Below, piece by piece: positions 1 to 63,286 of a DNA stretch of 64,000 bases. The stretch's first letter is position 1, and each line of letters opens with the position of its first letter. The DNA comes from Hyalangium minutum (GTDB taxonomy: Bacteria; Myxococcota; Myxococcia; Myxococcales; Myxococcaceae): positions 372,001 to 436,000 of the forward strand of contig NZ_JMCB01000008.1 of the NCBI RefSeq assembly GCF_000737315.1, read 5' to 3'. A program made the translations under genes and the position numbers. The notes under the pieces are model-generated. The model saw nothing but the letters and a program-made list of their open reading frames with translations, did not search any database and was not told the DNA's origin.

Positions 1-1135
1 AGGACGTCCAGGCCACCTCCGGCTCCACCCGCTGGAGGCCCTTCCAGCGCGACAGCATCACCTCCAGCATGACCTTCGCCTCCAGCCGGGCCAGCGGCGC
101 CCCGAGGCAGAAGTGGATGTCCTTGCCGAAGGCCAGGTGTCCCTGGGTGTCCCGGTGGATGTCGAAGCGGTCCGGATCCGGGAACCGGCTCTCGTCCCGG
201 TTGGCCGATGCCAGCAGCGGCAACACGATGCTCCCCTGGGGAAGGTGCTCGCCGCCCACCTCCAGGTCCGTGGTCGTCTGCCGGAAGATGCACTGGGCCG
301 GGCTTTCGTAGCGCAGCACCTCCTCCACCAACTGCGGAATGAGCGAGGGGTTCGCCCTCACCTCCTCGAAGACCTCGGGATGGTTCGTCAGCGTCACCAG
401 GGTGTTGCCGATGAGGCTCGTCGTGGTCTCGTTGCCGGCAATCAGCAGCGTATTGATGAACCTCAGCACCTCCTCCGACGTCAGCTGGGCGCCCTCCACC
501 TCCGCCTGCATCAGCAGCGAGATGAGATCCTCCTTCGGCTCGCGGCGCCGCAGCTCGATCTCCCCACTGAAGTAGTGGGCGAACTCCTGAGCCGATTTCT
601 TCACCTGGGCCACGTTGCCCGCCTTGATCAACGACAGCGAGCTCACGGAGTCGTCTGACCAGCGCTTGAAGTCCCGGCGGCGCTCGGGCCCCACCCCGAG
701 CAGCTCGGCGATGACGATCATCGGCAGAGGGACGGTGATGTCCTGCACCAGCTCGCACTCACGCTGACCGGCCACGGCCTCCACCAGCTCGTGGGAGATC
801 TGCCGGATGCGCGGCTCCAGCTGGGCGATGGTGCGCGGAGTAAACGCCTTCGTCACCAGGCCGCGCAGCTTGCCGTGCCGGGGCGGATCCATCTGCACGA
901 TGGAGGCCGAGGCGCTGCCCGGGCTCCGAAGCTCGGGCGGGATGCTGGCCGTATAGCCCGTGTTCGAGAAGTGCTTGGAGTTCTGGAGCAGACTCAGCAC
1001 GTCCTGGTAGCGGCCCACGCTCAAGAAGCCCGTGGGCATCAGCTTGCACACGGCGGACGCTCGGCGCATCTCCGAGAACACCGCGTAGGGGTTGCGCAGG
1101 ACGTGAGGCGCGGCGACGTCAAAGACGGCGATCAT
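1..1135 (-). CDS. Cytochrome P450 (3' end runs off the left edge)
   Basis: Manual translation from ATG at 1135: MIAVFDVAAPHVLRNPY...MDPPRHGKLRGLV...AGNETTT (I-helix)...EEVLRY (ExxR)...HLAFGKDIHFCLGAPLARLEA (heme Cys motif). Absent from the ORF track because the stop is outside the window. Confidence 0.95.
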   Translation of the reverse strand, partial: MIAVFDVAAPHVLRNPYAVFSEMRRASAVCKLMPTGFLSVGRYQDVLSLLQNSKHFSNTGYTASIPPELRSPGSASASIVQMDPPRHGKLRGLVTKAFTPRTIAQLEPRIRQISHELVEAVAGQRECELVQDITVPLPMIVIAELLGVGPERRRDFKRWSDDSVSSLSLIKAGNVAQVKKSAQEFAHYFSGEIELRRREPKEDLISLLMQAEVEGAQLTSEEVLRFINTLLIAGNETTTSLIGNTLVTLTNHPEVFEEVRANPSLIPQLVEEVLRYESPAQCIFRQTTTDLEVGGEHLPQGSIVLPLLASANRDESRFPDPDRFDIHRDTQGHLAFGKDIHFCLGAPLARLEAKVMLEVMLSRWKGLQRVEPEVAWTS

Positions 1136-1264
1136 GGGCTCTCCAAGCACAGGGGCTGCCACAGCCGCAGCGAACCGGCACATCCTAGCCCGCCCTCTCC
1201 TCCTGCGGGCCTCCCCCCCGCTGTCCCACATGCGCAGCAGGACGGACTCACCTAAACTGTCTCC

Positions 1265-2194
1265 ATGCCCCTCCATCCACAGGCAGCAAACTTCCTTTCC
1301 ATGGTGGCCGGCGCGCCGCCGCTCGACACACAAACCCCCGAGGAGAACCGGGCCGGGGTTCGGGCCGTCCTGCCACTGACCGGAGCACCCACGGCGCTGG
1401 CGGACGTCACCGACACCACGCTGCCAGGTCCGGGGGGCGCCATCCCCGTGCGAGTGTACCGCCCGAGCAACGCCTCCCAGTTGCCCGTCGTGGCGTACTT
1501 CCACGGCGGTGGATGGCTCCTGGGCGACCTGGACAGCCACGACTCCACGTGCCGGGACATCGCCCGTTACGCGGAGGCCGTGGTGGTGGCGGTCCACTAT
1601 CGCCTCGCACCCGAGAATCCATTTCCCGCCGCCTACGAGGACTGCCTGGCCGTCACAAAGGCCCTGCTGGACGACAGCGCCGGCCTCGGCACGGACCGCA
1701 CGAGGGTCGCCATCGCGGGAGACAGCGCAGGTGGCAACCTGGCCGCAGGCATCGCCCAGGCTCTGCGAGGCAGTTCCCCGGGGCTGGTCCACCAGGTGCT
1801 CATCTATCCCCTCATGGACGCGCGCCTGCACCCGACGGGCAGCTCCACGCAGTTCAGTGAGGGCCACTTCCTGTCCCGGCGTGACCTCGAGTACTTCGTG
1901 AACACCTACGCGGGCGCGGCCGACCGGCAGGACTGGCGCCTCTCCCCGGGGCTTGCCAAAGACTTGAGCGGCCTGCCAGCGGCGACCGTGCTCACCGCCG
2001 AGTGCGATCCCTTGCGCGACGATGGCGAGTCCTATGCGGCGGCGCTGCGCTCGGCCTCGGTTCCGGTCGAGTACCGGTGCTTCGAAGGCCAGGTCCACCC
2101 GTTCGTCATGCTGGGCGGCATCATCGACGCAGCGAACGAGGCCCGTCGCCTGATTGGCGAGCAGCTTCGGCAGTCCTTCGCTCGGGCCCCCTAG
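1265..2194 (+). CDS. Alpha/beta hydrolase, HSL (family IV) esterase/lipase
   Basis: YFHGGGW, GDSAGG nucleophile elbow, ECDPLRDDG acid motif, GQVHPF His motif. Confidence 0.95.
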   Translation: MPLHPQAANFLSMVAGAPPLDTQTPEENRAGVRAVLPLTGAPTALADVTDTTLPGPGGAIPVRVYRPSNASQLPVVAYFHGGGWLLGDLDSHDSTCRDIARYAEAVVVAVHYRLAPENPFPAAYEDCLAVTKALLDDSAGLGTDRTRVAIAGDSAGGNLAAGIAQALRGSSPGLVHQVLIYPLMDARLHPTGSSTQFSEGHFLSRRDLEYFVNTYAGAADRQDWRLSPGLAKDLSGLPAATVLTAECDPLRDDGESYAAALRSASVPVEYRCFEGQVHPFVMLGGIIDAANEARRLIGEQLRQSFARAP

Positions 2195-11957: not shown

Positions 11958-12189
11958 GAGCATCAGAAAAATGGGAGGCCAGTTGAAGGTCCTGGGCCTG
12001 TGGGTTGTCTTGAGCGCCTCAACACCCCGCTGCCTGATGTGGCCCTCGCGCCGCGGCCAGCCTCGCACCTGCCGTGGTCAGGCCCAGGGGCTTCACAATC
12101 GCGCGCCCCCCTCGTGCTGCCTTCACGTACGCCAACACCCTGAAGCCTGCCTCCACACCTCACGCAGGCGAACACGTCGAAGTCGAGTG
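11958..12189 (-). mobile_element. Degenerate 3' end of an IS91-like (Y2/zinc-binding) transposase plus downstream end sequence
   Basis: LDFDVFACVRCGGR/(frameshift)RVLAYVKAARGGRAIVKPLGL...GPHQAAGC*, recalled as the myxobacterial IS91-like C-terminus; 33-bp end motif shared with 16957..16989. Confidence 0.65.
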
Positions 12190-16956: not shown

Positions 16957-17480
16957 GAGCATCAGAAAAATGGGAGGCCGGTTGAAGGTGAGGGCTGGAG
17001 AGGAAGGGCCGAAGAGGGCTGCGGACGGGGTCCGCCCGAGCAGTAGCAACTCGGCCCAGTCCTCTCGCGGACTCCGCTGCTTCATCCGCTCCGTTCGGGC
17101 CGCTGCCTCCTTCCCCGAGCTCGACTCCTACTCACCGGCTTATCTTTCCATGCGCACATGGCAGGTACACCCTTTCATGGTCGATGTCAGAACCCTCCCG
17201 AGCGGATTGAGGCCATCCCTCTACCGTCGTCAGCATCTGGCGCATTAGGAGGAAGCACTGATCAGGCCGTTGGTGACCCGCTGGGAGTGAGCAGCGATGG
17301 CACTCTTGCGACCGAGGATTTGTTGCGTGTGACCGCCAACCCTTGAGGTTTGGGAGAGCCGAGGCGTGAGGCTCCAACCCGGCTCCTGCCTTCACACCTC
17401 ACGCAGGCGAACACGTCCAAGTCCAACGTCCTCCTCAGCAACTCGGCACTGTCCTCTCGCGGCGTCGCGAGCGGGGGCTC
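16957..17480 (-). mobile_element. Fragmented IS91-like transposase remnants
   Basis: PREDSAELLRRTLDLDVFACVRCEGR (~17360-17470), a second PREDWAELL piece (~17040-17085) and the 33-bp end motif at 16957..16989. Confidence 0.6.
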
Positions 17481-22147: not shown

Positions 22148-23623
22148 ATGCCGAAGATCTATTCATTAAAAGAAATTTTCTCGATCGACCTCAGATCGCT
22201 GGCCTGGTTTCGCGTGCTGATGGGCGCGCTTGCCGTGGCCGACGGGTTCAACCGGCTTTCCGTCGCGGAGGCTCATTACTCGGACAGCGGCGTTCTACCC
22301 AGAGCCGCTTACCTGACCGATATTGCGACCCGGTTCGAATTCAGCCTCACCCTGCTCTCCGGAGACTGGCGGTTTCAGGCTGCACTCATTTTGCTCCAGG
22401 TCGTGTGTGCCTTCTGCTTTATGGTGGGTTATCGCGGCCGCCTCAGTGCATTTCTCACCTGGATTCTGCTGCTTTCGTTTCACACGCGGCTTCCGATCAA
22501 TGCACATGGCGGCGACGACGTTTTGCGGCTGATGTTCTTCTGGTCGATATTCTTGCCAGTCAGCGCCAAGCACTCCATGGATGCCATCTTGAATTCCGAG
22601 CGAGAGCCCGTGCCAGACTCTGTGTCCGGCTTTGCGCCGGCTGCGATTCTCTTGCAGCTGGCCTTTGTTTACTCCTTCTCGTTCATCCACAAATGGAATC
22701 CCGTGTGGAACTCCGAGTTTTCGGCGCTTTACTATGCCTTGAACATCGATCATCTGGTGACTGCGCAAGGACGGTGGCTCTTGCAGTTTCCCGCCTTCTT
22801 GAGGTTCGCCACGCTGGGTACGATGATCCTGGAATGTACGGGGCCGCTGCTGGTGTTCTCGCCTGTCTTTCTGCCTCAACTGAGGATGATTGTTCCAGCG
22901 GTTTTCATCTTGTTCCACTTCTGCCTGTTCTTAGGCATGTACCTGGGGATCTTCCCGTGGATCTGCGCGATCAGCTGGTTGCTGTTTTTGCCGGGTGGGT
23001 TTTGGGCAAAGGTTGAACCTCGATTGGGTATCGGCTCCGGCCGCTTCCAGGGTTGGGTTCCCAGAATCGAGGCCCTGGTCAGAAAAAGGCCTCTGGCGTC
23101 CAGTGTCTCCTGGCTCAGCCAAAGCTTGGCGGCGGTCTTCCTGCTCTGGGTGCTCTGGTGGAATCTCACCACGGTTCATGCCCTCCGTGAGATGCCGAAG
23201 CCGCTCGGCGCTATCCTCTTCGGGCTCTACCTGGATGCAACGTGGAACCTGTTCGCACCGTTTCCGTTCAAGGATGATGGATGGTTCGTCATCGATGGAC
23301 TCACCCAGAATGGGGAGCACATCAACTTGATGACTCCAGGCGCACCGCTCACGGATGCCAAACCCGCCCTCGTCGCGAAGACTTACCCCAACTCCCAATG
23401 GAGGAAATATTTCATGAGCCTCTGGTTTGGGGACAATGACGCCTACTTGCCTTACTTCGGGCAGTATTTGTGCAACTCCTACAATCGGGACAAGCAGGGA
23501 CTTGATCGATTGGTCTCATTCAACATGTATTACATGCTGGAAATGACACCACCGCCCGGGGAGCCCGCTCCGCCCGTTGAGAAGAAATTGATGTGGACAC
23601 AGTTCTGCAGCGATGAATCCTAG
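22148..23623 (+). CDS. HTTM-domain integral membrane protein
   Basis: IDLRSLAWFRV, HYSDSGVLPR, GGDDVLRLMFFW, multiple TM helices; lower GC than neighbours. Confidence 0.8.
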   Translation: MPKIYSLKEIFSIDLRSLAWFRVLMGALAVADGFNRLSVAEAHYSDSGVLPRAAYLTDIATRFEFSLTLLSGDWRFQAALILLQVVCAFCFMVGYRGRLSAFLTWILLLSFHTRLPINAHGGDDVLRLMFFWSIFLPVSAKHSMDAILNSEREPVPDSVSGFAPAAILLQLAFVYSFSFIHKWNPVWNSEFSALYYALNIDHLVTAQGRWLLQFPAFLRFATLGTMILECTGPLLVFSPVFLPQLRMIVPAVFILFHFCLFLGMYLGIFPWICAISWLLFLPGGFWAKVEPRLGIGSGRFQGWVPRIEALVRKRPLASSVSWLSQSLAAVFLLWVLWWNLTTVHALREMPKPLGAILFGLYLDATWNLFAPFPFKDDGWFVIDGLTQNGEHINLMTPGAPLTDAKPALVAKTYPNSQWRKYFMSLWFGDNDAYLPYFGQYLCNSYNRDKQGLDRLVSFNMYYMLEMTPPPGEPAPPVEKKLMWTQFCSDES

Positions 23624-24058: not shown

Positions 24059-24736
24059 ATGTCAGTCGGGTTGAAGAAACCACTGGGTTTCGGAGGGATG
24101 CTGGTCGCGGCGGGAATGCTGTTCAACACGGCGAGCACAGCGCTCGCGGCTGACTCGGCTCCCAGCCAAGTTGTCCCGGAAGTGCTCGGGGCCGGCCCTG
24201 GTGGCGGCCAGGGCGGCGGCTACGGCGGCCAGCAGGGCGGTGGCCATGGTGGCGGCTACGGCGGCCAGCAGGGCGGTGGTCACGGTGGCGGCTACGGCGG
24301 CCAGCAGGGTGGTGGCCACGGTGGCGGCTACGGCGGCCAGCAGGGTGGTGGCCACGGTGGCGGCTACGGCGGCCAGCAGGGCGGTGGCCATGGTGGCGGC
24401 TACGGCGGCCAGCAGGGCGGTGGCCACGGTGGCGGCTACGGCGGCCAGCAGGGCGGTGGCCACGGTGGCGGCTACGGCGGCCAGCAGGGCGGCGGTCACG
24501 GTGGCGGCTACGGCGGCCAGCAGGGCGGTGGCCACGGTGGCGGCTACGGCGGCCAGCAGGGCGGTGGCCACGGTGGCGGCTACGGCGGCCAGCAGGGCGG
24601 CGGTCACGGTGGCGGCTACGGCGGCCAGCAGGGCGGTGGCCACGGTGGCGGCTACGGCGGCCAGCAGGGCGGTGGCCACGGTGGCGGCTACGGCGGCCAG
24701 CAGGGCGGTGGCCACCGCGGCGGCCACGGGGAATAA
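24059..24736 (+). CDS. Secreted glycine-rich repeat protein
   Basis: Signal peptide (..TASTALA) followed by 14 copies of GGGYGGQQGGGH; AG-rich RBS upstream. Confidence 0.8.
   Translation: MSVGLKKPLGFGGMLVAAGMLFNTASTALAADSAPSQVVPEVLGAGPGGGQGGGYGGQQGGGHGGGYGGQQGGGHGGGYGGQQGGGHGGGYGGQQGGGHGGGYGGQQGGGHGGGYGGQQGGGHGGGYGGQQGGGHGGGYGGQQGGGHGGGYGGQQGGGHGGGYGGQQGGGHGGGYGGQQGGGHGGGYGGQQGGGHGGGYGGQQGGGHGGGYGGQQGGGHRGGHGE
24212..24715 (+). repeat. 36-bp tandem repeat x14 (coding)
   Basis: Tyr codons run from 24221 to 24689 with an exact 36-bp period; variation is synonymous only. Confidence 0.95.
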
Positions 24737-52616: not shown

Positions 52617-52821
52617 GCGGGCGTATTTACTACAGCGGGGTGGAGGGAGCCTCGGGATAATGGCGGCGAAACCCGTTCCGGCTCGCCCGGCTGGAGACCG
52701 GAGAGAGAGCCCGCTGGGCGCACGCGTCGTCGCTGTCGACTGGGACCCAGAGGCGGACAAAAATAGAACGGACCTCCTCTTTCTCATCGCCGACACGGCG
52801 GGTCTTTCGAGCCACTCCACA

Positions 52822-53200
52822 CCTGGAGACTTCCTGAATGCTGAAGCGAATCATTCCGGCCCTTGCAGCACTGCTGGTGGCCTGTGTCGGCAACACCGAG
52901 TGCAGACTCGATGATCCACACTCATGCTCGTCCGGCCTCGTCTGCGAGCAAGTGAGCGGGGAGGATGTCCCCCAGTGCTTCGCGCCGGTGCAGGTCGAGG
53001 GGAAGGTGTTCGATCTGCTCTCGGGCCAGCCAGTCGCGGGCGCGGAGGTCACAGCGCTGGACATCAACGGGACCGCCGTAACAGGCGTTGCGGTGAGCGG
53101 CCTGGATGGCCACTACACCCTGCCCATCCCCACCGAGCGCTCGGACAGCGAGGGCACCCCTGTGGGCACGAGGGTGACGTTGCGGGCTGCTGCGCGCAAC
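52822..53200 (+). repeat. Left copy of a ~380-bp inverted duplication
   Basis: Reverse complement of 57688..58066 with scattered substitutions. Confidence 0.9.
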
Positions 53201-54244
53201 TACCGACCGTTCCCCTCGGGCGTGCGCATCTCACTGCCCCTGGACACCACGGGCGCCACCAGCGCCGGGAGTGAGCAGCCTTGGGTGCTCGCCTCGGCCC
53301 AGACGGACGTGGGCTTGAGCGCGGGACTGTCGGCGGAGCGATTCTGGCTGAACGTGTCCGGCACTGTGGAGCTGCCCACAGGCAAGCCCGCGCTCGTTGT
53401 TATTGAGGGCAACGGCCGGGTGTACTCCGCGGTGACGGACGCCTCGGGGACGTTCCGGGTGTTCAACGTGACACCGGGGAGCGGCTATACGGTCCAGGCC
53501 TATGTGAAGGGCGCCAACTACACGCAGGTGGATCTCCAGGTGCCGTCGTCGGGCATGGATGTGTCCTCGGTGAGCCTGCGCAGGGCGGGAGACGCGAGCG
53601 CTGTGCTGAACGGCAGCGTGCAGTGGGTGGCGGGGGCCAACAGCGCGGGCACCAGCGTCGTGATGATGGTGGAGAGCACCTTCCATGACGCGCTCGTTCG
53701 CGGCGAAGTGCCACCGGGGCTGCGTGCGCCGGATCCAGGCCAGGCCCCCACGGTGACGGGGGCTTTCTCCATCTCCGGAGTTCCAGACGGCAAGTACGTG
53801 GTGCTGGCGGCCTTCGACAACGACGGCAACGTGCGCGACCCGGACCCCAGCATCTCGGGCACACAGATTGTCCACCTGACGGTGGCCAATGGCATCCCGA
53901 GCCTGAGTCCCTCGTTCAAGGTGACGGGCGCCATCGAGATCACCAGTCCGGGTCCCGGGGAGGCGACCGACCAGGTGACGTTCCCGCCAAAGTTCCGCTG
54001 GAAGCCCTACCCCAGCGCCAGTTCCTACGAGGTGCGCCTGTTCGACTCGCAGGGCAGTGAAGTGTGGGAGAACCTGGCGGTGGCTGCGGACGCCCAGAAT
54101 GGCTCGGGCTTTGTCCAAGCGTCATATACGGGCAAGGCGCTGATCCGAGGCCTCACCTATCAGTGGCGCGCCACCGCCAAAGACACCTCGGGCAACCCCA
54201 TTTCCAGCACCGAGGATCTGCGCGGCCTGTTCATCGTGCAATAG
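52838..54244 (+). CDS. Lipoprotein with carboxypeptidase-regulatory-like beta-sandwich domains
   Basis: LLVACVG lipobox; Cys-rich N-terminal module; DGHYTL, SGTFRVFNVTPG, VPDGKYVV. Confidence 0.85.
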   Translation: MLKRIIPALAALLVACVGNTECRLDDPHSCSSGLVCEQVSGEDVPQCFAPVQVEGKVFDLLSGQPVAGAEVTALDINGTAVTGVAVSGLDGHYTLPIPTERSDSEGTPVGTRVTLRAAARNYRPFPSGVRISLPLDTTGATSAGSEQPWVLASAQTDVGLSAGLSAERFWLNVSGTVELPTGKPALVVIEGNGRVYSAVTDASGTFRVFNVTPGSGYTVQAYVKGANYTQVDLQVPSSGMDVSSVSLRRAGDASAVLNGSVQWVAGANSAGTSVVMMVESTFHDALVRGEVPPGLRAPDPGQAPTVTGAFSISGVPDGKYVVLAAFDNDGNVRDPDPSISGTQIVHLTVANGIPSLSPSFKVTGAIEITSPGPGEATDQVTFPPKFRWKPYPSASSYEVRLFDSQGSEVWENLAVAADAQNGSGFVQASYTGKALIRGLTYQWRATAKDTSGNPISSTEDLRGLFIVQ

Positions 54245-54290
54245 CGGCGACGGCCGCTGGGCCCAGCCAACCTTGCAGATGCTCCAAGCG

Positions 54291-54314
54291 GCGGGTTCGA
54301 TTGCCGTTGCCTCC
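54291..54314 (+). other. Degenerate tmRNA/tRNA 3'-end-like copy (possible att site)
   Basis: GCGGGTTCGATTGCCGTTGCCTCC; 19/24 identical to 55213..55236. Confidence 0.35.
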
Positions 54315-54655
54315 TGGCCGGAGTTCATGGGTCCGCTATCAAACATCCGGCCAGTCAAGCGCCTCATTCAACTCGCGCCTTTTGCCCGAGAAACTGTTGG
54401 ACGGAAACAAGCAGGCAAGACGGAAGACACCGAACAGGGGGTCGGCTCTTCGCTTGGAACTGGCGGTGCCGGTCTCCGAAACTGCGATGACGAACACATC
54501 CAGTGTTGTTCTCTCGCGTCGACGAAGCGATTGACTGGATTAGGACTCACAAGGCTGAAGTGGCACTCGGAATGGTCGTTATCATTGCCGGAACCGCCTT
54601 CGTCATCACCACAGGCGGCACTGGCGCGCTGATTCTCGCTCCTCTTGCACTCTAA
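54315..54655 (+). pseudogene. Internally deleted, frameshifted myxobacterial Cys-containing (toxin-like) gene
   Basis: ...GLRNCDDEHIQC joins out of frame to FSRVDEAIDWIRTHKAEVALGMVVIIAGTAFVITTGGTGALILAPLAL* (TAA 54653-54655). Confidence 0.55.
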
Positions 54656-54667
54656 CCTGACACGCCA

Positions 54668-55045
54668 ATGACCTATAACTCAAACTTCGACATTGACGCC
54701 GTCATGAAGACCGTTGGTACAGTGGGAGCAAAATACCCGGAGGGTACGCCGGAAGACGAGGCGCTCCGAATTGTCTCGCTGGCGTTGCTTTACGTTCGCG
54801 ACATCCAGAAGTTGGATGACTACCGTGAATATTTCCGGCGATTCTTCACCTACAAGCCTGTGACCATTGCTCAGACATTCGCGACAAGAGACGAAGCGGA
54901 CACGTGGCTCGCCAGCGGAGAAGCAAAGGACGGCGATCTGGTCAAAATCGCTGACCAAGGGTTCATCGTGATAGATGCGCTCAAGGGGTTGAAGTTCGTG
55001 CCGACGCGCCTGCCGGAGGAACTGGCACCTCCAGGTTCGCAGTAG
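54668..55045 (+). CDS. Small hypothetical protein, putative orphan immunity/partner protein
   Basis: Intact 125-aa ORF 12 nt after the remnant; lower GC. Confidence 0.7.
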   Translation: MTYNSNFDIDAVMKTVGTVGAKYPEGTPEDEALRIVSLALLYVRDIQKLDDYREYFRRFFTYKPVTIAQTFATRDEADTWLASGEAKDGDLVKIADQGFIVIDALKGLKFVPTRLPEELAPPGSQ

Positions 55046-55209
55046 GCCACGCTCGGGCGGTGCGGGCTACTGAGGTGGGCATTGCAGACCGTGTACGCGC
55101 GGCCCGCAAGTTCTGGCCGCTCGCATCCGTGAGCGGCTCCCCCCTGGTGGCCGCATGTACCCCCCGTGTGCCCCTCCAGCGGGGAATTGAGGGGTTTTGC
55201 TTCCGCCTT

Positions 55210-55237
55210 GATGCGGGTTCGATTCCCGCCGCTCCCA
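55210..55237 (+). other. tmRNA/tRNA 3'-end fragment (T-arm + acceptor strand), att-like
   Basis: GCGGG-TTCGATT-CCCGC then CGCTCCC-A; no 5' part upstream; followed by a GCCGCC/GGCGGC hairpin and repeated GGGACC. Confidence 0.6.
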
Positions 55238-55427
55238 AGCAGAGCAACCCGCCGCTTTCAAGGCGCCGCCCTCTGAGAACGGCGGCGGCGCTCGCATTTT
55301 CGGGACCAAATCCGGTTTTTGGGACCCCAAAAGGACCAAGCCGGAGACGGAAACGACATGAGCAAGACGTGGCTCGGCAAGTGGAAGCGTATAGGCGGGA
55401 TACGCCTGGCTAGACAACGCGGCCACC

Positions 55428-56073
55428 ATGAGTGGCCAGGTCATCATCCGAGACCTGGGGCTGGATGGAAACTCCGCCAACAACACCACCGCCGAGACGA
55501 ATGGCATGGTGTTGCTGGCCGACAACGCTGTCGTGGAGAACACCCAGATCTTGAACATGCGGGGCTCTGGAATCCAGCTGACGAGCACCAACCGCGCGGG
55601 CACTCCAGCGAATGCACTCTCAAGCTCCTTCCCCACGCTGGGAGGGCGCATCGCGAAAAATGTCATTTCGAAGCCGGGCGGCCACGGCATCCTCATCAAG
55701 GGTGTGGACTGGCTCGTCGAAGTGCTCGACAACCAGATCGATGGCACCGGCCTGGATGGTATCGTCCTGGACAGCGGTAGCGTGTGTGTGGTGCGCGGCA
55801 ATGACCTCTTCATGATCGGCAAGAATGGGATCGTCACCAAGGCCCATGTGTTCATCACCACCGTAAAGTAGCCTCACCGTGATCGGGAACACCCTTGATG
55901 GCGTGGGGGGCACTGGGCTTGGGAACAATGGCCTTCATTATACCTATGGTGTCGCTCTTTCGAGCACTGGGACCTGGATCATCAAAGATAACTTGATTAA
56001 CCATATCGGAAGCATACACACGCCGTATTTGAAGACGTACCAGAAAACAGATTCGGAATGCAGCAGTTTCTAG
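55428..56073 (+). pseudogene. Fragmented right-handed beta-helix (pectate-lyase-like) gene
   Basis: IRDLGLDGN, NTQILNMRGSGI, KNVISKPGGHGI, DNQIDGTGLDGI; stop at 55871 then continues in another frame (IGNTLDG, KDNLIN). Confidence 0.6.
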
Positions 56074-56155
56074 GCAGCGCGCCGCCAGGCATCAGACATC
56101 CTTCCATTCAATTTCTCCATGCACTTTGAGTAGCTCGCCAGTATAGCGTGATGAC

Positions 56156-57598
56156 ATGAACCGATTCGCCGTCACAATGTTAGTGGTTACGCTGTCCGCG
56201 GGGGTGTGCGAGGCGTTGGGCTCCAGCCCGCCAGGCTACAGCGTTCAGATAACGCGCGCTGGCCTCGACCCCCTCATCAACGGCATTGCCAACCTGTCCG
56301 AGGCGTACGCCAAGAAAAGCCCTGCGCCGGACGCCACCATGGACATCTCTAACGTCCACTTGATCTTCAAAGGGATGAGCATCAGCACGTTGGAGCGGCC
56401 GGCGTTCGTGTACACGTTGCAAGCACCGAACAAGCTCCTCACCAAGGTCACCTTGCCCAAGGTCATCATCAAGGGCCTCTTTCAGGCGTCGCGACGGACG
56501 CAATTCGAGACGCAAGAAGATCAAGGCAACGTCGACTTCACCCTGGTCAACGCCACGCTCACGCAGTCCGTCACCCTCGGCACGTTCGAGAACGGCATCC
56601 TGAGAGTCGACCAACGCGACTGCAAAGCGACCCTCGGTTCGACCAACGTGGCCATCCAGAACAACCAACAATCATTCTCGGCCGATGCAGTCAGGGCAGC
56701 CGCCCCAGCGGAACGGCAACTGCTCGCCACGAATCTGTGCAACGTGTTGACCCAGCTGCTGACGAAGAAAGTGGACAGGGCCCTGGCTCAATTGCCAAGC
56801 GTGTTGAGCTTCAGCAACAACGTGTCGTTGAAGGGGCAGCTCACGCCGGCCTTCACAGTCGACTCTGTCAAAGTGAACTTCTCCGAAGAGAGCATCACCG
56901 GCTTCGCCAGTGCCTGGGCGCCGGTCCTGTGCGACACGAGCGTGGCAGGCAGTCCGCAGGCCATCCTGACCGTGAGCGACGTCACGTTCAACAAGCTCTT
57001 GTACCTGGATTACAAGAGCGGCCTCTTGAACTTCACCCTCTCGCCGTCCAGCGCGCCCATCCTGTACCAGAAAATAACGTTGGACTGCGGCGAGTCCGGC
57101 GTGTGCCTGGGCAACGTGGACAAGAAGTTGCCCGAGCGCTTCGGCAAGGACGCAAAGGTCGAGCTGCAGATGGAAGCGCCCATGGCGTCCACCCTCGAAT
57201 TCAAAGAGAGCAGTACCGCCATGACGGCCAGCTGGCGCGCCACTGTCTACATCACGAAGAATCAAGAGGGCGCCCCCCGGACGCTGGTGGCCAGCGGCGC
57301 TGTGTCCGCCAGCGGGCCGCTGCAAGCGAACATCCAAGGCGAGAAGGCCTACGGCAGGGTGAACATCGCGGAGCTCAAGCTCAAAGTCGATCAGCCCGAG
57401 GTGCAATCCTGGGATCAGGACGCCCAGAGCCTGTTCAAGGACATCGTCCAAACCTACATCAACGATTTCTTCTTGAAAGACGGACTCTCGTTGCCGTCGG
57501 GACTGAGCGTCGAGAACGCGAGCATCAAATTCAGCCCCCACTGTGGGAAAGCGCCGTTCAGCTTGGACTACACGGGAATCTTGAGCAGCGAAGAATGA
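56156..57598 (+). CDS. BPI/LBP/CETP-family (two-domain TULIP) secreted lipid-binding protein
   Basis: 480 aa with signal peptide; [14 protein letters not shown], Cys156/Cys195 pair, [37 protein letters not shown] align by eye to BPI landmarks. Confidence 0.8.
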   Translation: [480 protein letters not shown]

Positions 57599-57627
57599 CC
57601 CAAAGAGAGCGCTCCGAGGCCATGCTG

Positions 57628-58050
57628 CTATGGGGCGCGCGGCGCTCTGGCCCCAATGTCTTGCCCCATGGCACGGGACATCGGAGGGTTGCGCGCGGCG
57701 GCCCGCAGCGTCACTCTCTTGCCCACGGGGGTGCCCTCGCTGTCCGAGCGCTCGGTGGGAATGGGCAGGGCGTAGTGACCATCCACGCCGCTCACCGCGA
57801 CGCCCGCCACGGCGGTCCCGTTGATGTCCAGCGCTGTCACCTCCGCGCCCGCGACTGGCTGGCCTGAGAGGAGATCGAACACCTTGCCCTCGACCTGCAC
57901 CGGCGCGAAGCACTGGGGGATATCCTTCCCGCGCACATGCTCACAGACGAGACCGGACGAGCATGAGCGTGGATCATCGAGTCTGCACTCGGTGTTGCCG
58001 ACACAGGCCATCAGCAGTGCTGCAAGGGCCGGAATGATTCGCTTCAGCAT
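57628..58050 (-). pseudogene. Truncated inverted copy of the 5' end of 52838..54244
   Basis: First ~121 aa near-identical (MLKRIIPALAALL...TLRAAARN), then an unrelated ~19-aa tail. Confidence 0.9.
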
Positions 58051-58066
58051 TCAGGAAGTCTCCTGG
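57688..58066 (-). repeat. Right copy of the ~380-bp inverted duplication
   Basis: Reverse complement of 52822..53200. Confidence 0.9.
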
Positions 58067-58186
58067 CATGAAGGGGCTCGAACGACCCGATCTGGCCCTG
58101 GTACTCCGGACGAAGGCAAGCGAAGTTGCCCCCCAGACAGCAGGCCCACTACTGTCGGAGCTTTGGTCTTCCAAAGGACCGCACGC

Positions 58187-60844
58187 GTGCGACGCTCCTC
58201 TCTCAGCCCTCGGCTCTCCCCCGCATCTTCCTCTTTCCTGGCCGTCCTGGCCCTGCTCGTCGCGGCTCCCGCCAGCGCGCAGTGGACTGCGGGGCCTGCC
58301 ATGGCGGGTGCCCACTCGCAGGGGGTGGCTGTCACCGATACCAACGGCCGCATCCACGTGATCGGCGGCAGCAGCACCACTGCCAGCGAGACCAGTCTTC
58401 ACGAGGAATTCAACCCCGCCACCAACACCTGGACCAGCCGCGCCCCCTTGCCCACCGCCAGTCGTGGCATGGGGGCCTCCCTGGGACCCGACGGACGCAT
58501 CTACGTCTATGGTGGCTACAGCGGCACGGGCGCCACCGGCGCGTTCTACGCCTACAACCCCAGCACCAACGCGTGGACCACCCTGCCCTCCATGCCCACC
58601 CCTGTGTGGATGCCTCGGGGCGACTTCGCCTTGGACGGAAGGCTCTTCGTCTTCGGTGGAGAGAACAGCTCGGGCACCCCTCTCGACACGACCCAGATCT
58701 ACAACCCCTCCAACAACCTCTGGACCCTGGGTTCAAGCATGGGCCTGGCGCGCAAACAGCATGGGGTCTTCCGAGGCTCGAGTGGGAGCCTCTACGTCGT
58801 GGGCGGCCAGAACGCCAACGGCGTGGCGATCAGCTTGGTGTATTCCTACACCCCCTTCACCGGTACCTGGAACGTCGGCCCGAGCATGCCGGTGGCCATG
58901 AACTCCTTCGGCCAGGCCCTCTCGGCAGACCGCACCCGGTTCTTCGTGCTTGGAGGCTCGAGCAGCAACGGCAACGACAGCGCGCCCTACTTCAACAATG
59001 TCTACATGTTCAACGAGGAGACCCATACCTGGTCGAGCCTCACCCCGCTCACCACGGGGCGCCGCGACCTGGCGGCCAGCGTGATCGGCTGCCGGCTGCG
59101 TGCCCTCGGCGGCACCAACGGCACCCGCCTCGCGACCCATGAGGTGTTCCAGCTCACCGGCGCGCCAGACGACAATGGCAATGGTCTACCGGACTACTGC
59201 GAGAATGGGGCGGACAGGGATGGCGACTCGGTGGCGGACGCCAACGACAACTGCCCTACCCTCTCCAACCCGGATCAGCGCAACACCGACGGTGACAGCC
59301 AGGGTGACGCGTGCGACGCCGACGATGACAACGATGGGGTGCCCGACACCACCGACAACTGCTCGCTGGTGGCCAACGCCAGCCAGGCCAACGCGGACGG
59401 CGACAGCCAGGGTGACGCGTGCGACGCCGACGACGACAACGATGGGGTGCCCGATACCACCGACAACTGCTCGCTGGTGGCCAACGCCAACCAGACCAAC
59501 ACGGACGGAGACAGCCAGGGTGACGTCTGCGACGCCGACGACGACAACGATGGGGTACAGGACACCGTCGACAACTGCTCCCTGATCTCCAATTCGAACC
59601 AGACCAACACCGACGGAGACAGCCAGGGCGACGTCTGTGACGCGGACGATGACAACGACGGAGTGGCGGACGTCACCGATAACTGCTCCCTCCTCTCCAA
59701 TCCGGACCAGCGCAACACGGACAATGACAGCCAGGGTGACATCTGCGACGCCGACGACGACAACGATGGGCTGCAGGACACCGTCGACAACTGCCCCCTG
59801 ATCTCCAATTCGAACCAGACCAACACCGACAGCGACAGCCAGGGTGACGCGTGCGACGCGGACGACGACAACGACGGCGTGGCGGACGCCACCGATAACT
59901 GCTCCCTCCTCTCCAACCCGGATCAGCGCAACACGGACAATGACAGCCAGGGTGACGTCTGCGACGCCGACGACGACGGCGATGGGGTGCCCGACACCAC
60001 CGACAACTGCGTCCTGATCTCCAACCCGGGTCAGGCTGATCAGGACAACGATGGCCGAGGCGATGTCTGCGACAACGACGGCGACAACGACACCGTGTCC
60101 GATGCGCAGGACAACTGCCCCACCGTCCCCAACGCGGACCAGACCGACTCGGATGGCGACAACCAGGGCAACGTTTGCGACCTGGATGATGATGGCGACG
60201 GAGTGGCGGACGCCACCGACAACTGCTCGCTCATCGCCAACTCCGACCAGCGCAACACCGACGGAGATTTTGACGGTGACGTGTGCGACCAGGATGACGA
60301 CAACGACAGCATCACGGACAACGGGGACAACTGCCCCCTGGTGGTCAACACCGACCAGCGCAACACCGACGGCGACAGCACGGGCGATGCCTGCGACAGC
60401 GACAGTGACAATGACGGGGTGCCTGACACCACCGATAACTGCGACTTCGTCTCCAACGCCGATCAGGCCAACGCCGACAACGACGCGCAGGGCAACGCTT
60501 GCGACTCGGACGACGACAATGACACCGTGGCCGATGGCTCGGACAACTGCCCGCTCACCCCCAACACCGACCAGGCCGACAGCAACAGGAACGGCAAGGG
60601 CGACGCCTGCGACGTGGACAACGACACCGACAAGGACGGCATCGCCAACGCCGTGGACAACTGCCCCCAGGTGGCCAACCCTGACCAGGCGGACTCCGAC
60701 ACGGACGGCAAGGGCGACGCCTGCGAGGGCGACGGCGAGGGCGGAGGTTGCGGCTGCGGCGCGGGCCCTACCGGCGCCTCGAGCCTGATGGTGTGGGCGC
60801 TGGCCAGCCTCGCCCTGATGGCCCGTCGGCGCTTCGTCCGCTGA
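58187..60844 (+). CDS. Kelch propeller + 14 thrombospondin type-3 repeats + MYXO-CTERM surface protein
   Basis: GTG start after AAGGA; signal ..AAPASA; GG..Y..W Kelch blades; 14 DNC repeats; GGGCGCGAG...LALMARRRFVR. Confidence 0.9.
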   Translation: MRRSSLSPRLSPASSSFLAVLALLVAAPASAQWTAGPAMAGAHSQGVAVTDTNGRIHVIGGSSTTASETSLHEEFNPATNTWTSRAPLPTASRGMGASLGPDGRIYVYGGYSGTGATGAFYAYNPSTNAWTTLPSMPTPVWMPRGDFALDGRLFVFGGENSSGTPLDTTQIYNPSNNLWTLGSSMGLARKQHGVFRGSSGSLYVVGGQNANGVAISLVYSYTPFTGTWNVGPSMPVAMNSFGQALSADRTRFFVLGGSSSNGNDSAPYFNNVYMFNEETHTWSSLTPLTTGRRDLAASVIGCRLRALGGTNGTRLATHEVFQLTGAPDDNGNGLPDYCENGADRDGDSVADANDNCPTLSNPDQRNTDGDSQGDACDADDDNDGVPDTTDNCSLVANASQANADGDSQGDACDADDDNDGVPDTTDNCSLVANANQTNTDGDSQGDVCDADDDNDGVQDTVDNCSLISNSNQTNTDGDSQGDVCDADDDNDGVADVTDNCSLLSNPDQRNTDNDSQGDICDADDDNDGLQDTVDNCPLISNSNQTNTDSDSQGDACDADDDNDGVADATDNCSLLSNPDQRNTDNDSQGDVCDADDDGDGVPDTTDNCVLISNPGQADQDNDGRGDVCDNDGDNDTVSDAQDNCPTVPNADQTDSDGDNQGNVCDLDDDGDGVADATDNCSLIANSDQRNTDGDFDGDVCDQDDDNDSITDNGDNCPLVVNTDQRNTDGDSTGDACDSDSDNDGVPDTTDNCDFVSNADQANADNDAQGNACDSDDDNDTVADGSDNCPLTPNTDQADSNRNGKGDACDVDNDTDKDGIANAVDNCPQVANPDQADSDTDGKGDACEGDGEGGGCGCGAGPTGASSLMVWALASLALMARRRFVR

Positions 60845-60994
60845 GACCTGAGCCCTGGATGGGGCCTTGCTCACAAGCCCAGCCCTCTGACATCCCCCTG
60901 CTGCGAGGACAGCCTGGGCAGGGGTGTGCATCATTCTCCTGCTCGCCAGCTCATTCCTTCCGTGGGGCCATCCCGGCCCCTCGAAAGTGAAACC

Positions 60995-63286
60995 ATGCCT
61001 ACCCTCCGGCGTCTCGCCTACCTAACCGCGGTGCTGGTCTTTGCCGTCGCCTGCACTTCCGAGCCCACCGGCTCCGTGCAATTCATCGCCTCTGTCCCTC
61101 AGGCCCTCTCCGCCAACGATGTCACCCGCGTCAAGGTGACCGTCTCCGCCGCGGATATGTCTTCCCTCGTCGTCGAGATGGCACCGTCTCATGGCTCCTG
61201 GGGCGGACTCATCGGCAACATCCCGGCTGGCTCCAACCGCTCCTTCCTCGCCGAGGCCTTCGACTCCTCCGGTATCAGGCGCTTCCAGGGCCAGAGCTCT
61301 GGCGTCACCATCACCGCCAACCAGACCACCGCCGTGGCCATCACCCTCCAGGAGCTGGCTCCCCCTCTTCCCTATGCCAATGAGGCTCCCGTCATTGACT
61401 CCCTGGTGGCCTCCTCCACCTCTGTCCAGGCCGGTTCCGCGCTCTCGCTGACAGCCACGGTTCATGATCCCAACGCCGGAGACACCCTCACCCTCGCGTG
61501 GACTGCCTCCGGTGGCACCTTCACCGCCCCCACGGCCACGAGCACCTCCTGGACGGCTCCTTCCTCTGCAGGCGTGCAGACGCTCACCCTCACGGTGACC
61601 GACTCCCAGGGCGCTGCCGTCGCCGTCTCTCTCGCCGTCAACGTCCTCTCTGGGGCCTCCACCGGTAACGCCGCCGTCAACATCTCCTTCAACCTCTGGC
61701 CCACTGTCTCCAGCGTCTCGGCCTCTCTCCACCGCCTGGATGCAGGTCAGTCCACCACCGTCTCCGCCCATGCCTCGGATGCCGATGGCGACGCCCTCTC
61801 CTACCAGTGGGCTGCGAGCTGCCCTGGTACCTGGACGAATGCGGCTTCCAGCTCCGCATCCTTCGAGCCTTCCTCGGTTCCGGCCGGCGTGTGCAACAAC
61901 TGCCGGCTCACCGTCACCGTTCAGGACGGTCGCGGCGGGCAGACCACCGGCTCGCTCCACCTCTGCATCGCCTCCTCCTCTACCCAGCGCTTCGCTCCGT
62001 CCTTCACTCACTACTACCAGTCCGCTACGGCCGCCTCCCCGGGCCAGACCGTGACCTTTGACGTCACCGCCCTGGACCCTCAGTCCAGTACTCTGACGTT
62101 TGCCTGGGCCTCCAACACTGGCTCGCTTGCCTCGGCCCAGCACACCGCCAACACCAGCCATGTTGTTTGGACGGCACCGGCCTGCGTGCAAACAGGTGTC
62201 ACCCCCACCGTCACCGCTACCGTCACCAATGCCTACGGCTTGCCGGCCTCCAAGGCGTTCTCCCTTTCTGGCCTGCCGACGTGCGCGGCCGACTGGACCG
62301 CTTCAGGCTCCATGTCCGTCGCCCGCCGGTTCCACACCGCCACCCGGCTCGTCTCCGGCAAGGTCTTCGTCACGGGAGGCGACGATTCGTCTGGCTATCA
62401 CACCGCCGCGGACGTGTTCGATCCGGTCACCCGTTCCTGGTCCGCCGCGGCCCCCATGGCCGTGGGCCGCAATGCCCACGCCGCCGCCCTGCTCGCCTCC
62501 GGGAAGGTCCTCGTCACGGGGGGCAACAATGCTGGCGCCCTTTCCACCGCTGCGGTGTACGACCCGGATACCAACTCCTGGTCCGCGGCCACCTCCATGA
62601 CCACGGCCCGTTTCCACCACACCTCCACCCTGCTGCCCTCCGGCAAGGTGCTTATCGCGGGAGGCCTCAACTCGGCTGGCGGCCTTGCCACCGCGGCCCT
62701 GTACGATCCGGCCACCAACTCCTGGTCCGCGGCCGGGTCTATGGCTTCGGTCCGCTACCAACACATCGCCACCCTGCTGCCCTCGGGCAAAGTGCTCGTC
62801 ACCGGGGGCCCCGGCTCTCCCCTTGCCGCCGCGGAGGTGTACAACCCGGCCACCAATACCTGGGCCTCCGCCGGTTCCATGGCCACGGCCCGCCAGCTTC
62901 ACACCGCCACCCTGCTCTCCTCCGGCAAGGTCCTCGTCGCGGGAGGTGATCAGCCTGGCCCCCTTGCCTCCGCGGAGGTGTATGACCCGGCCACCAACTC
63001 CTGGTCCGCGGCTGCTCCCATGGCCGTGGGCCGCCGGGCTCACGCCGCCGCCCTGCTGCCCTCTGGCAAGGTGCTCATCGCGGGAGGCCTGGGCACCAAC
63101 AGTCCCATGGCTGCTTCGGAGGTGTACGACCCGGCCACCAACTCCTGGTCCTCCACCGATTCCATGACATCGCTCCGCAACTACCACACCGCCACCGCGC
63201 TCTCTTCGGGCGAGGTTCTCGTCACGGGGGGCTACACGGCCCTCCACTCTGCCGTCACCTCCTCCACGGAGCTCTACAGGCCCTGA
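60995..63286 (+). CDS. Lipoprotein with Ig/PKD-like domains and seven Kelch repeats
   Basis: VFAVACTS lipobox; seven M...R..H.A.LL.SGKVL..GG blades. Confidence 0.9.
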   Translation: MPTLRRLAYLTAVLVFAVACTSEPTGSVQFIASVPQALSANDVTRVKVTVSAADMSSLVVEMAPSHGSWGGLIGNIPAGSNRSFLAEAFDSSGIRRFQGQSSGVTITANQTTAVAITLQELAPPLPYANEAPVIDSLVASSTSVQAGSALSLTATVHDPNAGDTLTLAWTASGGTFTAPTATSTSWTAPSSAGVQTLTLTVTDSQGAAVAVSLAVNVLSGASTGNAAVNISFNLWPTVSSVSASLHRLDAGQSTTVSAHASDADGDALSYQWAASCPGTWTNAASSSASFEPSSVPAGVCNNCRLTVTVQDGRGGQTTGSLHLCIASSSTQRFAPSFTHYYQSATAASPGQTVTFDVTALDPQSSTLTFAWASNTGSLASAQHTANTSHVVWTAPACVQTGVTPTVTATVTNAYGLPASKAFSLSGLPTCAADWTASGSMSVARRFHTATRLVSGKVFVTGGDDSSGYHTAADVFDPVTRSWSAAAPMAVGRNAHAAALLASGKVLVTGGNNAGALSTAAVYDPDTNSWSAATSMTTARFHHTSTLLPSGKVLIAGGLNSAGGLATAALYDPATNSWSAAGSMASVRYQHIATLLPSGKVLVTGGPGSPLAAAEVYNPATNTWASAGSMATARQLHTATLLSSGKVLVAGGDQPGPLASAEVYDPATNSWSAAAPMAVGRRAHAAALLPSGKVLIAGGLGTNSPMAASEVYDPATNSWSSTDSMTSLRNYHTATALSSGEVLVTGGYTALHSAVTSSTELYRP

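Follow-up and report, generated by a model that had tools for sequence, protein, structure and literature searches.

How does a gene of the BPI/LBP family, an innate-immunity effector aimed at the bacterial outer membrane, come to lie in the genome of a predatory bacterium, and what might its product do there? The question is raised by a stretch of 64,000 nucleotides of Hyalangium minutum DNA (contig NZ_JMCB01000008.1, positions 372,001 to 436,000; hereafter the window), in which an original prediction, made from the sequence alone, recognized an intact open reading frame (ORF) of 480 codons with a signal peptide and suspected a myxobacterium as the host. The frame is indeed uninterrupted from its ATG start, a putative signal peptide is discernible by sequence inspection, and the record JMCB00000000 belongs to H. 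minutum DSM 14724T, the type strain of this myxobacterium (PMC5441343). The explanation that best accounts for the observations, and to which a probability of roughly 55% may be assigned, is that of a captured eukaryotic BPI/LBP gene that was patchily kept and whose product acts on foreign envelope lipids. The family itself is well known, and this member is of interest for its host, its probable origin in another kingdom, a cationic surface that has been lost and a rapid rate of evolution; the literature searched contained no mention of BPI/LBP homologues from myxobacteria.

The product of the gene is almost certainly a genuine full-length, two-domain member of the BPI/LBP/CETP family, as judged from the agreement of domain models, profile searches and a predicted structure, which bears out the family assignment of the original prediction. 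The Pfam model LBP_BPI_CETP_C (PF02886) matches residues 271-440 with 41.7 bits against a cutoff of 23 (E = 1.2e-10), while the N-terminal model LBP_BPI_CETP (PF01273) scores 22.5 bits over residues 124-202 (E = 1e-4) and stays below its cutoff of 28.8; a precomputed PF01273 match is present in two homologues, and an NCBIfam search with the Hyalangium protein gave no meaningful match. A single-sequence phmmer search against the PDB retrieved nothing relevant, and profiles were needed for PDB matches. With a profile of five myxobacterial-type sequences alone, the best PDB sequence was human BPI (1BP1, E = 1.6e-6), in a collinear match of residues 25-348 to BPI residues 3-328, and a mixed profile of bacterial, protist and mollusc sequences matched BPI (3.6e-74), LBP (1.1e-63) and CETP (4.7e-26) over the full length. 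The AlphaFold2 model (mean predicted local distance difference test score, pLDDT, 84.9; predicted template modelling score, pTM, 0.76) presents the layout of helix, long sheet and long helix twice, and the predicted structure contains two TULIP (tubular lipid-binding) barrels joined by a central sheet into a boomerang. Its best Foldseek match in the PDB is again 1BP1 (E = 6.7e-29, template modelling (TM) scores 0.75/0.78, 474 columns), and LBP and CETP rank after it.

The details of the alignment agree with this assignment. Four motif pairs with human BPI had been proposed, and all four were aligned in the proposed manner by HMMER, including Cys156 and Cys195 on BPI Cys135 and Cys175; both cysteines are invariant in the family alignment and would, by this alignment, form the equivalent disulfide. 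A motif in the C-terminal half that had been likened to invertebrate LBP/BPI proteins, C311-x5-C317-L-G319, proved to be nearly invariant in protist and mollusc homologues and missing from human BPI. Human BPI (1BP1/1EWF), LBP (4M4D) and invertebrate LBP/BPI proteins (Anadara, Elysia) are matched by the Hyalangium protein in full-length collinearity, two barrels and a putative signal peptide; the cysteine pair and the position of a dibasic hairpin, kept as R113-R114, recur in human BPI, and invertebrate and protist members have the C-x(n)-C-[LIV]-G motif in common with it. Unlike human BPI, the Hyalangium protein is bacterial, has only 16% identity to it over the structural alignment and evolves with a ratio of nonsynonymous to synonymous divergence (dN/dS) near one. 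The putative signal peptide ends in VCEA, an AxA-like cleavage site common to two protist homologues (P0007 and P0008), and its region is modelled as a low-pLDDT helix at residues 3-19; a canonical lipobox is absent from the Hyalangium N-terminus, and the Corallococcus homologue (P0004) is without the cysteine.

The view that known bacterial TULIP proteins are mostly distant also holds. YceB of Escherichia coli and P47 and OrfX1/2/3 of Clostridium botulinum share a fold element of the superfamily with it (for P47/OrfX, Foldseek gives a probability of 1.0), but their TM scores to the model reach only 0.15-0.31 against 0.75 for BPI, their architecture is different, and they carry no Pfam BPI signal. 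A BPI-like protein, TipA (Bd2538), has since been described in Bdellovibrio bacteriovorus: it is a divergent double-TULIP protein, mis-annotated as DUF2785 and recognized by structure, that is upregulated at invasion, enters prey by secretion, attaches to bilayers and carries lipids inside its lumen, and it possesses dimerization inserts and an operonic adapter, the small beta-sandwich protein TipB (bioRxiv 10.1101/2025.09.09.675085). TipA likewise combines a double-TULIP architecture with a signal peptide and comes from a Gram-negative predator; among functional analogies, it is the nearest one for a BPI-like lipid binder of bacteria that acts on the membranes of prey. The Hyalangium protein is set apart from TipA by the latter's description, being recognized directly by the Pfam BPI models and showing no DUF2785 match (Pfam, E <= 10), and no conserved adjacent gene resembling TipB occurs in the window or at two loci with homologues (L001 and the Corallococcus locus L006). 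The Hyalangium protein complements TipA by indicating a second, independent route of predatory bacteria to double-TULIP proteins. A precedent for cross-kingdom gene sharing within the phylum is the goose-type lysozyme, an animal-type antibacterial effector found in myxobacteria and animals and discussed as a case of horizontal transfer in the direction from bacteria to animals (PMC13337447), with a fold and activity unrelated to those of the Hyalangium protein.

The presence of such a gene in a draft assembly, with a local dip in G+C content and a rearranged neighbourhood, could be trivially explained by an assembly chimera or by eukaryotic contamination. The gene lies, however, about 428 kb into a contig of 589,979 bp (JMCB01000008.1, GCA_000737315.1) of the type strain and has no intron; its G+C content at third codon positions (GC3, 0.84) is the same as that of the flanking lipoprotein gene (0.84) and close to that of the Kelch/thrombospondin type-3 gene (0.85), and homologues with 43-63% identity reside on other high-GC contigs of myxobacterial type, including an NCBI genome of Corallococcus. 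Since the contig, the host-like GC3 and the homologues all speak for the locus, misassembly or contamination is very unlikely. The lower G+C content remarked upon in the original prediction is real (0.60 in the gene, 0.67 in the window) but is no mark of recent transfer: with GC3 at the level of the host, the dip is an effect of the protein's amino-acid composition, and foreign codon usage is not its cause. By the same token, the transfer, judged from a codon usage that appears fully ameliorated, is old and not recent.

In bacteria the gene is very rare. When 1.84 billion cluster representatives were scanned exhaustively with HMMER (E <= 1e-3), only 50 matches came up, and shallow word-indexed homologue searches yielded 5, 6 and 16. 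The close homologues, at the identity given above, are the Corallococcus llansteffanensis protein, which bears the NCBI name 'hypothetical protein', and three proteins of metagenomic or SRA origin whose contigs are high in G+C (P0002, P0003 and P0005). A pattern scan of one genome per species (185,579 bacterial and archaeal species) recovered C. llansteffanensis CA051B only; a genome scan with the single Hyalangium protein and a metagenome scan with the bacterial profile returned nothing. A broad, vertically inherited bacterial clade, which would have offered another account of the gene, was not found in these scans. No synteny was observed among the three full-length loci with usable flanks (the window, L001 and the Corallococcus locus), and the window itself holds no paralogue of the gene. 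A version comprising the N-terminal domain only (P0011; 241 residues, signal peptide, 33% identical to the Hyalangium protein) occurs at L010 2042-2767 and L011 1211-1936 with a G+C content of 0.715; its identical sequence is found on three metagenome contigs, where it adjoins a trehalose-phosphate synthase/phosphatase gene, and it represents either a derivative that is stable with a single domain or a truncated copy from a different high-GC bacterium.

The nearest relatives outside the bacteria form an environmental protist clade of more than 20 sequences (among them P0007-P0010, P0063, P0067-P0078 and L009) with 26-33% identity to the Hyalangium protein (E 1e-68 to 1e-44). They are found on contigs of 1.6-1.8 kb with AT-rich untranslated flanks around a GC3-rich ORF and are thus mRNA-like; one of them, L009, is a genomic contig of 4.7 kb in which the gene is split by a 63-nt intron with GT-AG borders (GTAATG...polypyrimidine-TAG), and removal of this intron restores the conserved NDVAYQ-AYANDKL. 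The protist proteins resemble the bacterial ones in the VCEA end of the signal peptide, an A-x-RRT hairpin and the C...C-LG motif, and group with them at 100% bootstrap; they differ in the GT-AG intron, the AT-rich untranslated regions, a cationic N-terminal domain and a lower dN/dS (0.23-0.55). The protist transcripts also display a motif, AAAGCGCAAC, near the 5' end (L014, L016, L017), which recurs as its reverse complement, GTTGCGC(TTT), close to the 3' end (L004, L015, L017), the 3' transcript-end motif of the clade reading GTTGCGCTTT; both are present in the genomic L009 as well, at positions 20 and 1859, and may be a lineage-specific transcript-end signal of possible use in tracing the donor. 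Beyond this clade, mollusc, hemichordate, nematode and vertebrate BPI/LBP proteins follow at about 20% identity, and the family is also known from free-living amoebae: Acanthamoeba has six members, and proteins of the family are used by bacterivorous amoebae (PMC4053784).

The position of the bacterial genes was assessed in neighbour-joining trees (Kimura distances, 473 columns, 200 bootstraps), to which mouse LBP and human CETP were added for rooting. The split separating the bacteria, the marine sequence P0006 and the protist clade from all others obtained 100% bootstrap, and the grouping of the bacteria with P0006 obtained 99-100%. CETP attached to deuterostome sequences, namely to Saccoglossus in 123 of the 200 replicates and to vertebrate BPI/LBP in 25; in none of the recorded placements did it join the bacteria or the protist clade, and with the root on CETP the bacterial and protist clade sits seven nodes deep inside the eukaryotic tree. 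The nested placement among intron-bearing eukaryotic genes, together with a broad distribution in eukaryotes as opposed to one in 185,579 species, makes a transfer from a eukaryote to a bacterium, as originally proposed, very probable on this sequence evidence. The opposite history, in which the family is bacterial in origin and protists acquired it from myxobacteria, or in which it descended vertically in bacteria with massive loss, draws on the fact that an unrooted tree with monophyletic bacteria gives no direction and on the soil habitats common to myxobacteria and protists; it is highly improbable given that BPI/LBP proteins are spread through animals and Amoebozoa (PMC4053784) but nearly absent from bacteria, and given the depth at which the CETP root places the clade. 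A search of viral structures with Foldseek gave no match to the model and thus no hint of a giant virus as the vehicle, and neither PADLOC nor PHROGs tied the gene to phages or known defence systems. Transfers of complete, intact genes in this direction are uncommon, and that of an effector directed against the bacterial envelope is more unusual still.

Since its arrival the gene has changed rapidly. By the NG86 (Nei-Gojobori) method, the four bacterial genes differ with dN of 0.25-0.49 and dS of 0.29-0.44, and dN/dS is 0.88-1.15; by region it amounts to 0.91-1.51 in the N-terminal domain and 0.75-1.01 in the C-terminal domain. An artefact of synonymous saturation caused by GC3 bias was considered and rejected, since 15-30% of four-fold sites differ among the bacterial genes as against 57-65% expected at compositional saturation (27-50% of saturation), and since the controls gave values of 0.20 for the duplicated lipoprotein arms in Hyalangium and 0.23-0.55 for the protist clade. 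Ratios near one, the pseudogene fragments and truncated duplicate around the gene and the decayed or truncated relatives elsewhere (L018, L007, L008, L010) would all be at home in a functionless relic, a decaying passenger evolving neutrally in a junk-rich accessory region. Such decay is nevertheless distinctly improbable: the four bacterial ORFs stay at 475-482 codons with only 16 gapped and 132 invariant columns, in simulations of neutral substitution up to the divergence observed, the ORF survives with a probability of only about 0.001-0.007 per comparison, structural Cys, Gly and Pro residues are invariant across bacteria and eukaryotes, and GC3 is held at the level of the host. As the ORFs remain intact in spite of a dN/dS near one, the gene therefore appears to be kept by selection while its protein sequence changes unusually fast, above all in the ligand-binding N-terminal domain, a turnover that fits proteins of antagonistic interactions. 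The Hyalangium and Corallococcus copies differ at about 24% of four-fold sites, a modest synonymous divergence that hints at a passage between myxobacteria later than the separation of the two host families; the contigs have no flanking genes in common against which the divergence of the host species could be calibrated.

What the protein might do is suggested by what has been lost. The net charge of the N-terminal domain is +3 in Hyalangium (isoelectric point 8.9) and +1 to +3 in the bacterial members, as against +14 in human BPI (isoelectric point 9.7); strongly cationic N-terminal domains (net +13 to +15) are found in human BPI, mollusc LBP/BPI and the protist proteins P0007 and P0008, with +6 in P0009. 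Arg94 and Lys95 of LBP, equivalent to the BPI hairpin position, are needed for LPS (lipopolysaccharide) binding, and the hairpin at BPI residues 86-99 is the LPS- and heparin-binding region of BPI. Its Hyalangium counterpart has four basic and four acidic residues in place of six and one, with the dibasic R113-R114 kept. By sequence, then, the cationic N-terminal domain and lysine-rich hairpin of BPI proper are lacking in the Hyalangium protein, and the bacterial copies appear to have lost the polycationic domain while retaining the scaffold, the disulfide pair and the predicted secretion signal. The permeabilization of prey in the manner of BPI, one of the functions first envisaged, is accordingly weakened, because the polycationic domain is not retained, and a lipid or LPS binder used on other cells is favoured over a bactericidal protein of the BPI type. 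By analogy with TipA, and from the sequence features described, the product could tentatively be regarded as a secreted or vesicle-borne lipid- or LPS-binding protein acting on other cells in predation or competition, an assignment somewhat short of even odds.

The favoured course of events, that of a captured gene whose product acts on foreign envelope lipids, would begin long ago with an ancestor within the Myxococcota that took the gene from a bacterivorous microbial eukaryote and continue with its patchy retention in accessory, rearrangement-prone regions of a few myxobacteria. The protein would be exported by the general secretory (Sec) pathway, acquire its disulfide(s) in the periplasm and then reach the cell surface, vesicles of the outer membrane or the surrounding medium, where the two apolar TULIP pockets may bind acyl chains of foreign envelope lipids, either LPS/lipid A or phospholipids. 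On contact with prey or competitors it might serve as a lipid extractor, carrier or recognition factor, acting in a manner nearer to LBP or TipA than to the cationic, directly bactericidal BPI, and its rapid evolution, strongest in the N-terminal ligand-binding domain, would then be an adaptation to variable targets. A more pointed proposal, in which predatory myxobacteria took over the LPS-binding effector of their own protist grazers and use it, in secreted or vesicle-bound form, on Gram-negative prey or to counter recognition by the grazers, with an N-terminal domain under diversifying selection (dN/dS above 1) and an accessory cassette moving among myxobacteria, is speculative and for the present doubtful.

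Two other functions can be set against this course of events. A Sec signal peptide with no obvious further secretion signal, a near-neutral N-terminal domain that suits a carrier of the CETP/PLTP kind more than a cationic killer, and the role of TULIP proteins as generic lipid transporters (10.1101/2025.09.09.675085) would also agree with a self-directed periplasmic carrier that moves the cell's own lipids or LPS between the membranes, into vesicles or through outer-membrane exchange without acting on other cells. Housekeeping functions of the envelope are, however, normally conserved, syntenic and under strong purifying selection, whereas the gene is present in very few myxobacteria, lacks synteny and has a dN/dS near one, which renders this carrier rather unlikely. 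The second is an anti-grazer decoy, a secreted, non-toxic copy of a protist LPS sensor or effector that would coat or buffer the cell's own LPS, or act as a competitor of amoebal BPI/LBP, and thereby dampen recognition and killing by the grazers. It is in keeping with the protist genes being the closest relatives, with the use of the family by bacterivorous amoebae (PMC4053784), with the loss of charge and retention of fold expected of a binding-competent but non-bactericidal mimic, and with fast evolution as in an arms race; the idea is wholly an inference, the literature searched offered no known example of such a decoy, and its predictions at the sequence level are the same as those of the favoured hypothesis, and on balance it is unlikely, slightly more so than the carrier.

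Several observations weigh against the preference for a captured gene acting on foreign lipids. A dN/dS near one is equally expected from relaxed constraint, and NG86 is crude on GC3-biased genes. Export by Sec alone reaches the periplasm only, and neither a secretion partner nor a conserved neighbour was found at the window, L001 or L006. The gene lies among pseudogene fragments and could be on its way to loss, and other lineages carry a decayed remnant (L018, on a high-GC contig, residues 266-342 only) and N-domain-only or truncated versions (L010 and, from a low-coverage long-read assembly, L007 and L008). As to origin, the trees are neighbour-joining trees with simple distances, and CETP, their outgroup, is a paralogue from vertebrates; the group of the four bacterial sequences by themselves obtains only 68-69% bootstrap, their closest sister P0006 (a marine scaffold of 2.3 kb, G+C content 0.41) is assigned to no domain of life, and the donor-like clade consists of environmental contigs.

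The system is open to experiment, for the gene resides in a predator whose type strain can be cultivated, a donor-like clade is present in environmental transcriptomes and several independent bacterial copies are available. The role of a BPI/LBP scaffold inside a Gram-negative cell, the recycling of grazers' weapons by predators and the identity of the parts of the fold under diversifying selection all become testable, and structure-function work gains a BPI/LBP relative from a bacterium that is easy to express and amenable to genetics.

The features of the gene and its surroundings are collected in Table 1. The description of the region as scarred was apt: it contains an inverted repeat, a tRNA/tmRNA-like fragment (tmRNA, transfer-messenger RNA) and fragments of a right-handed beta-helix gene, which are probably a pseudogene. 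The arms of the repeat, 402 nt each and 92% identical without gaps, comprise 39 nt upstream and the first 121 codons of the neighbouring lipoprotein gene. The tRNA/tmRNA-like fragment reads GCGGGTTCGATTCCCGCCGCTCCCA and is possibly an old att-type integration scar of an integrative element, to judge by its sequence; ARAGORN and Rfam detected no intact tRNA, tmRNA or other RNA in the window. A scan for the sigma-70 consensus upstream of the gene gave nothing meaningful.

Table 1. Coordinates of the BPI/LBP-family gene, the predicted parts of its product and the surrounding features in the window.
Feature	Position	Strand	Remarks
BPI/LBP-family gene	56156..57598	+	ATG start, 480 codons plus stop, uninterrupted; Pfam, PDB profile and fold matches
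Predicted Sec signal peptide	56156..56215	+	Residues 1-20, likely cleavage after VCEA; n/h/c layout judged by sequence inspection
N-terminal TULIP barrel	56225..56890	+	Residues ~24-245; alignment to BPI residues 3-230, AlphaFold2 helix-strands-long helix
Cys156-Cys195 pair	codons 56621-56623 and 56738-56740	+	Within N-terminal barrel; Cys invariant in alignment
R113-R114 hairpin	in N-terminal TULIP barrel	+	Mapped onto BPI hairpin
Central sheet and C-terminal TULIP barrel	56891..57568	+	Residues ~246-471; PF02886, pLDDT mostly above 85
Upstream intergenic region	56074..56155	+	G+C content ~0.50
Lower-GC accessory segment within inverted repeat	54245..57687	.	G+C content 0.50-0.63 vs 0.67
Inverted repeat, left arm	52799..53200	+	Start of CarboxypepD_reg lipoprotein gene 52838-54244
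Inverted repeat, right arm	57688..58089	-	Truncated duplicate, ORF 57628-58050 (140 residues), ends 30 nt past the BPI-like stop codon
Orphan ORF	54668..55045	+	125 residues, GC3 only 0.67, no family match
tRNA/tmRNA 3'-end-like fragment	~55205..55242	+	GCGGGTTCGATTCCCGC plus acceptor-like tail; weak tmRNA match, 13.6 bits
Beta-helix gene fragments (probable pseudogene)	55428-55871 and 55879-56073	+	Pfam Beta_helix E = 2.7e-10; split ORFs

The neighbours of the bacterial copies vary from locus to locus. In the window, the genes around the BPI-like gene are secreted or surface proteins and gene fragments; downstream on the forward strand follow a secreted protein with Kelch propeller repeats and 14 thrombospondin type-3 repeats (58187-60844; 13 tandem DNA units of 108 nt) and a large secreted protein with PKD/Big_9 domains and a Kelch propeller (60926-63286). 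At L001, a 569-residue protein of scytovirin/MVL-type lectin repeats (254-1963, forward strand) ends 62 nt upstream of the BPI homologue on the same strand, and a response regulator is also present. At the Corallococcus locus, an SMI1/KNR4 (SUKH-1) gene (L006 1384-1923, forward strand) lies directly upstream, accompanied by a beta-barrel-like ORF; members of the SUKH-1 family are usually treated as the immunity proteins that accompany polymorphic toxins.

Two intergenic elements, A (GAGCATCAGAAAAATGGGAGGCC) and B (containing GCCTCAACACCCCGCTGCCT), are 88-97% conserved between Hyalangium and the locus L002, with copies at 11958-11990, 12008-12086 and 16957-17041 of the window and at 161-239 and 1875-1969 of L002. 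In L002 they flank the BPI-like gene in the order B-gene-A, whereas the window has A next to B at 12.0 kb and a further A at 17.0 kb, giving a layout of B, 5 kb and A. They belong to no Rfam family and could be cassette boundaries or a repeat like the repetitive extragenic palindromic (REP) or miniature inverted-repeat transposable (MITE) elements; as marks of a mobile cassette for the Hyalangium gene they were discarded, no copy being near that gene.

Elsewhere in the window, a second lower-GC patch at 22-24 kb (G+C content 0.57-0.60) holds a gene for a 491-residue membrane protein with an HTTM domain (22148-23623, forward strand; Pfam E = 1.5e-7), a family related to the vitamin-K-dependent gamma-carboxylase and another one also found in eukaryotes. 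Close to it, at 24059-24736 on the forward strand, a protein with a signal peptide and no Pfam match consists almost wholly of GGGYGGQQGGGH repeats and coincides with a local peak in G+C content of 0.74.

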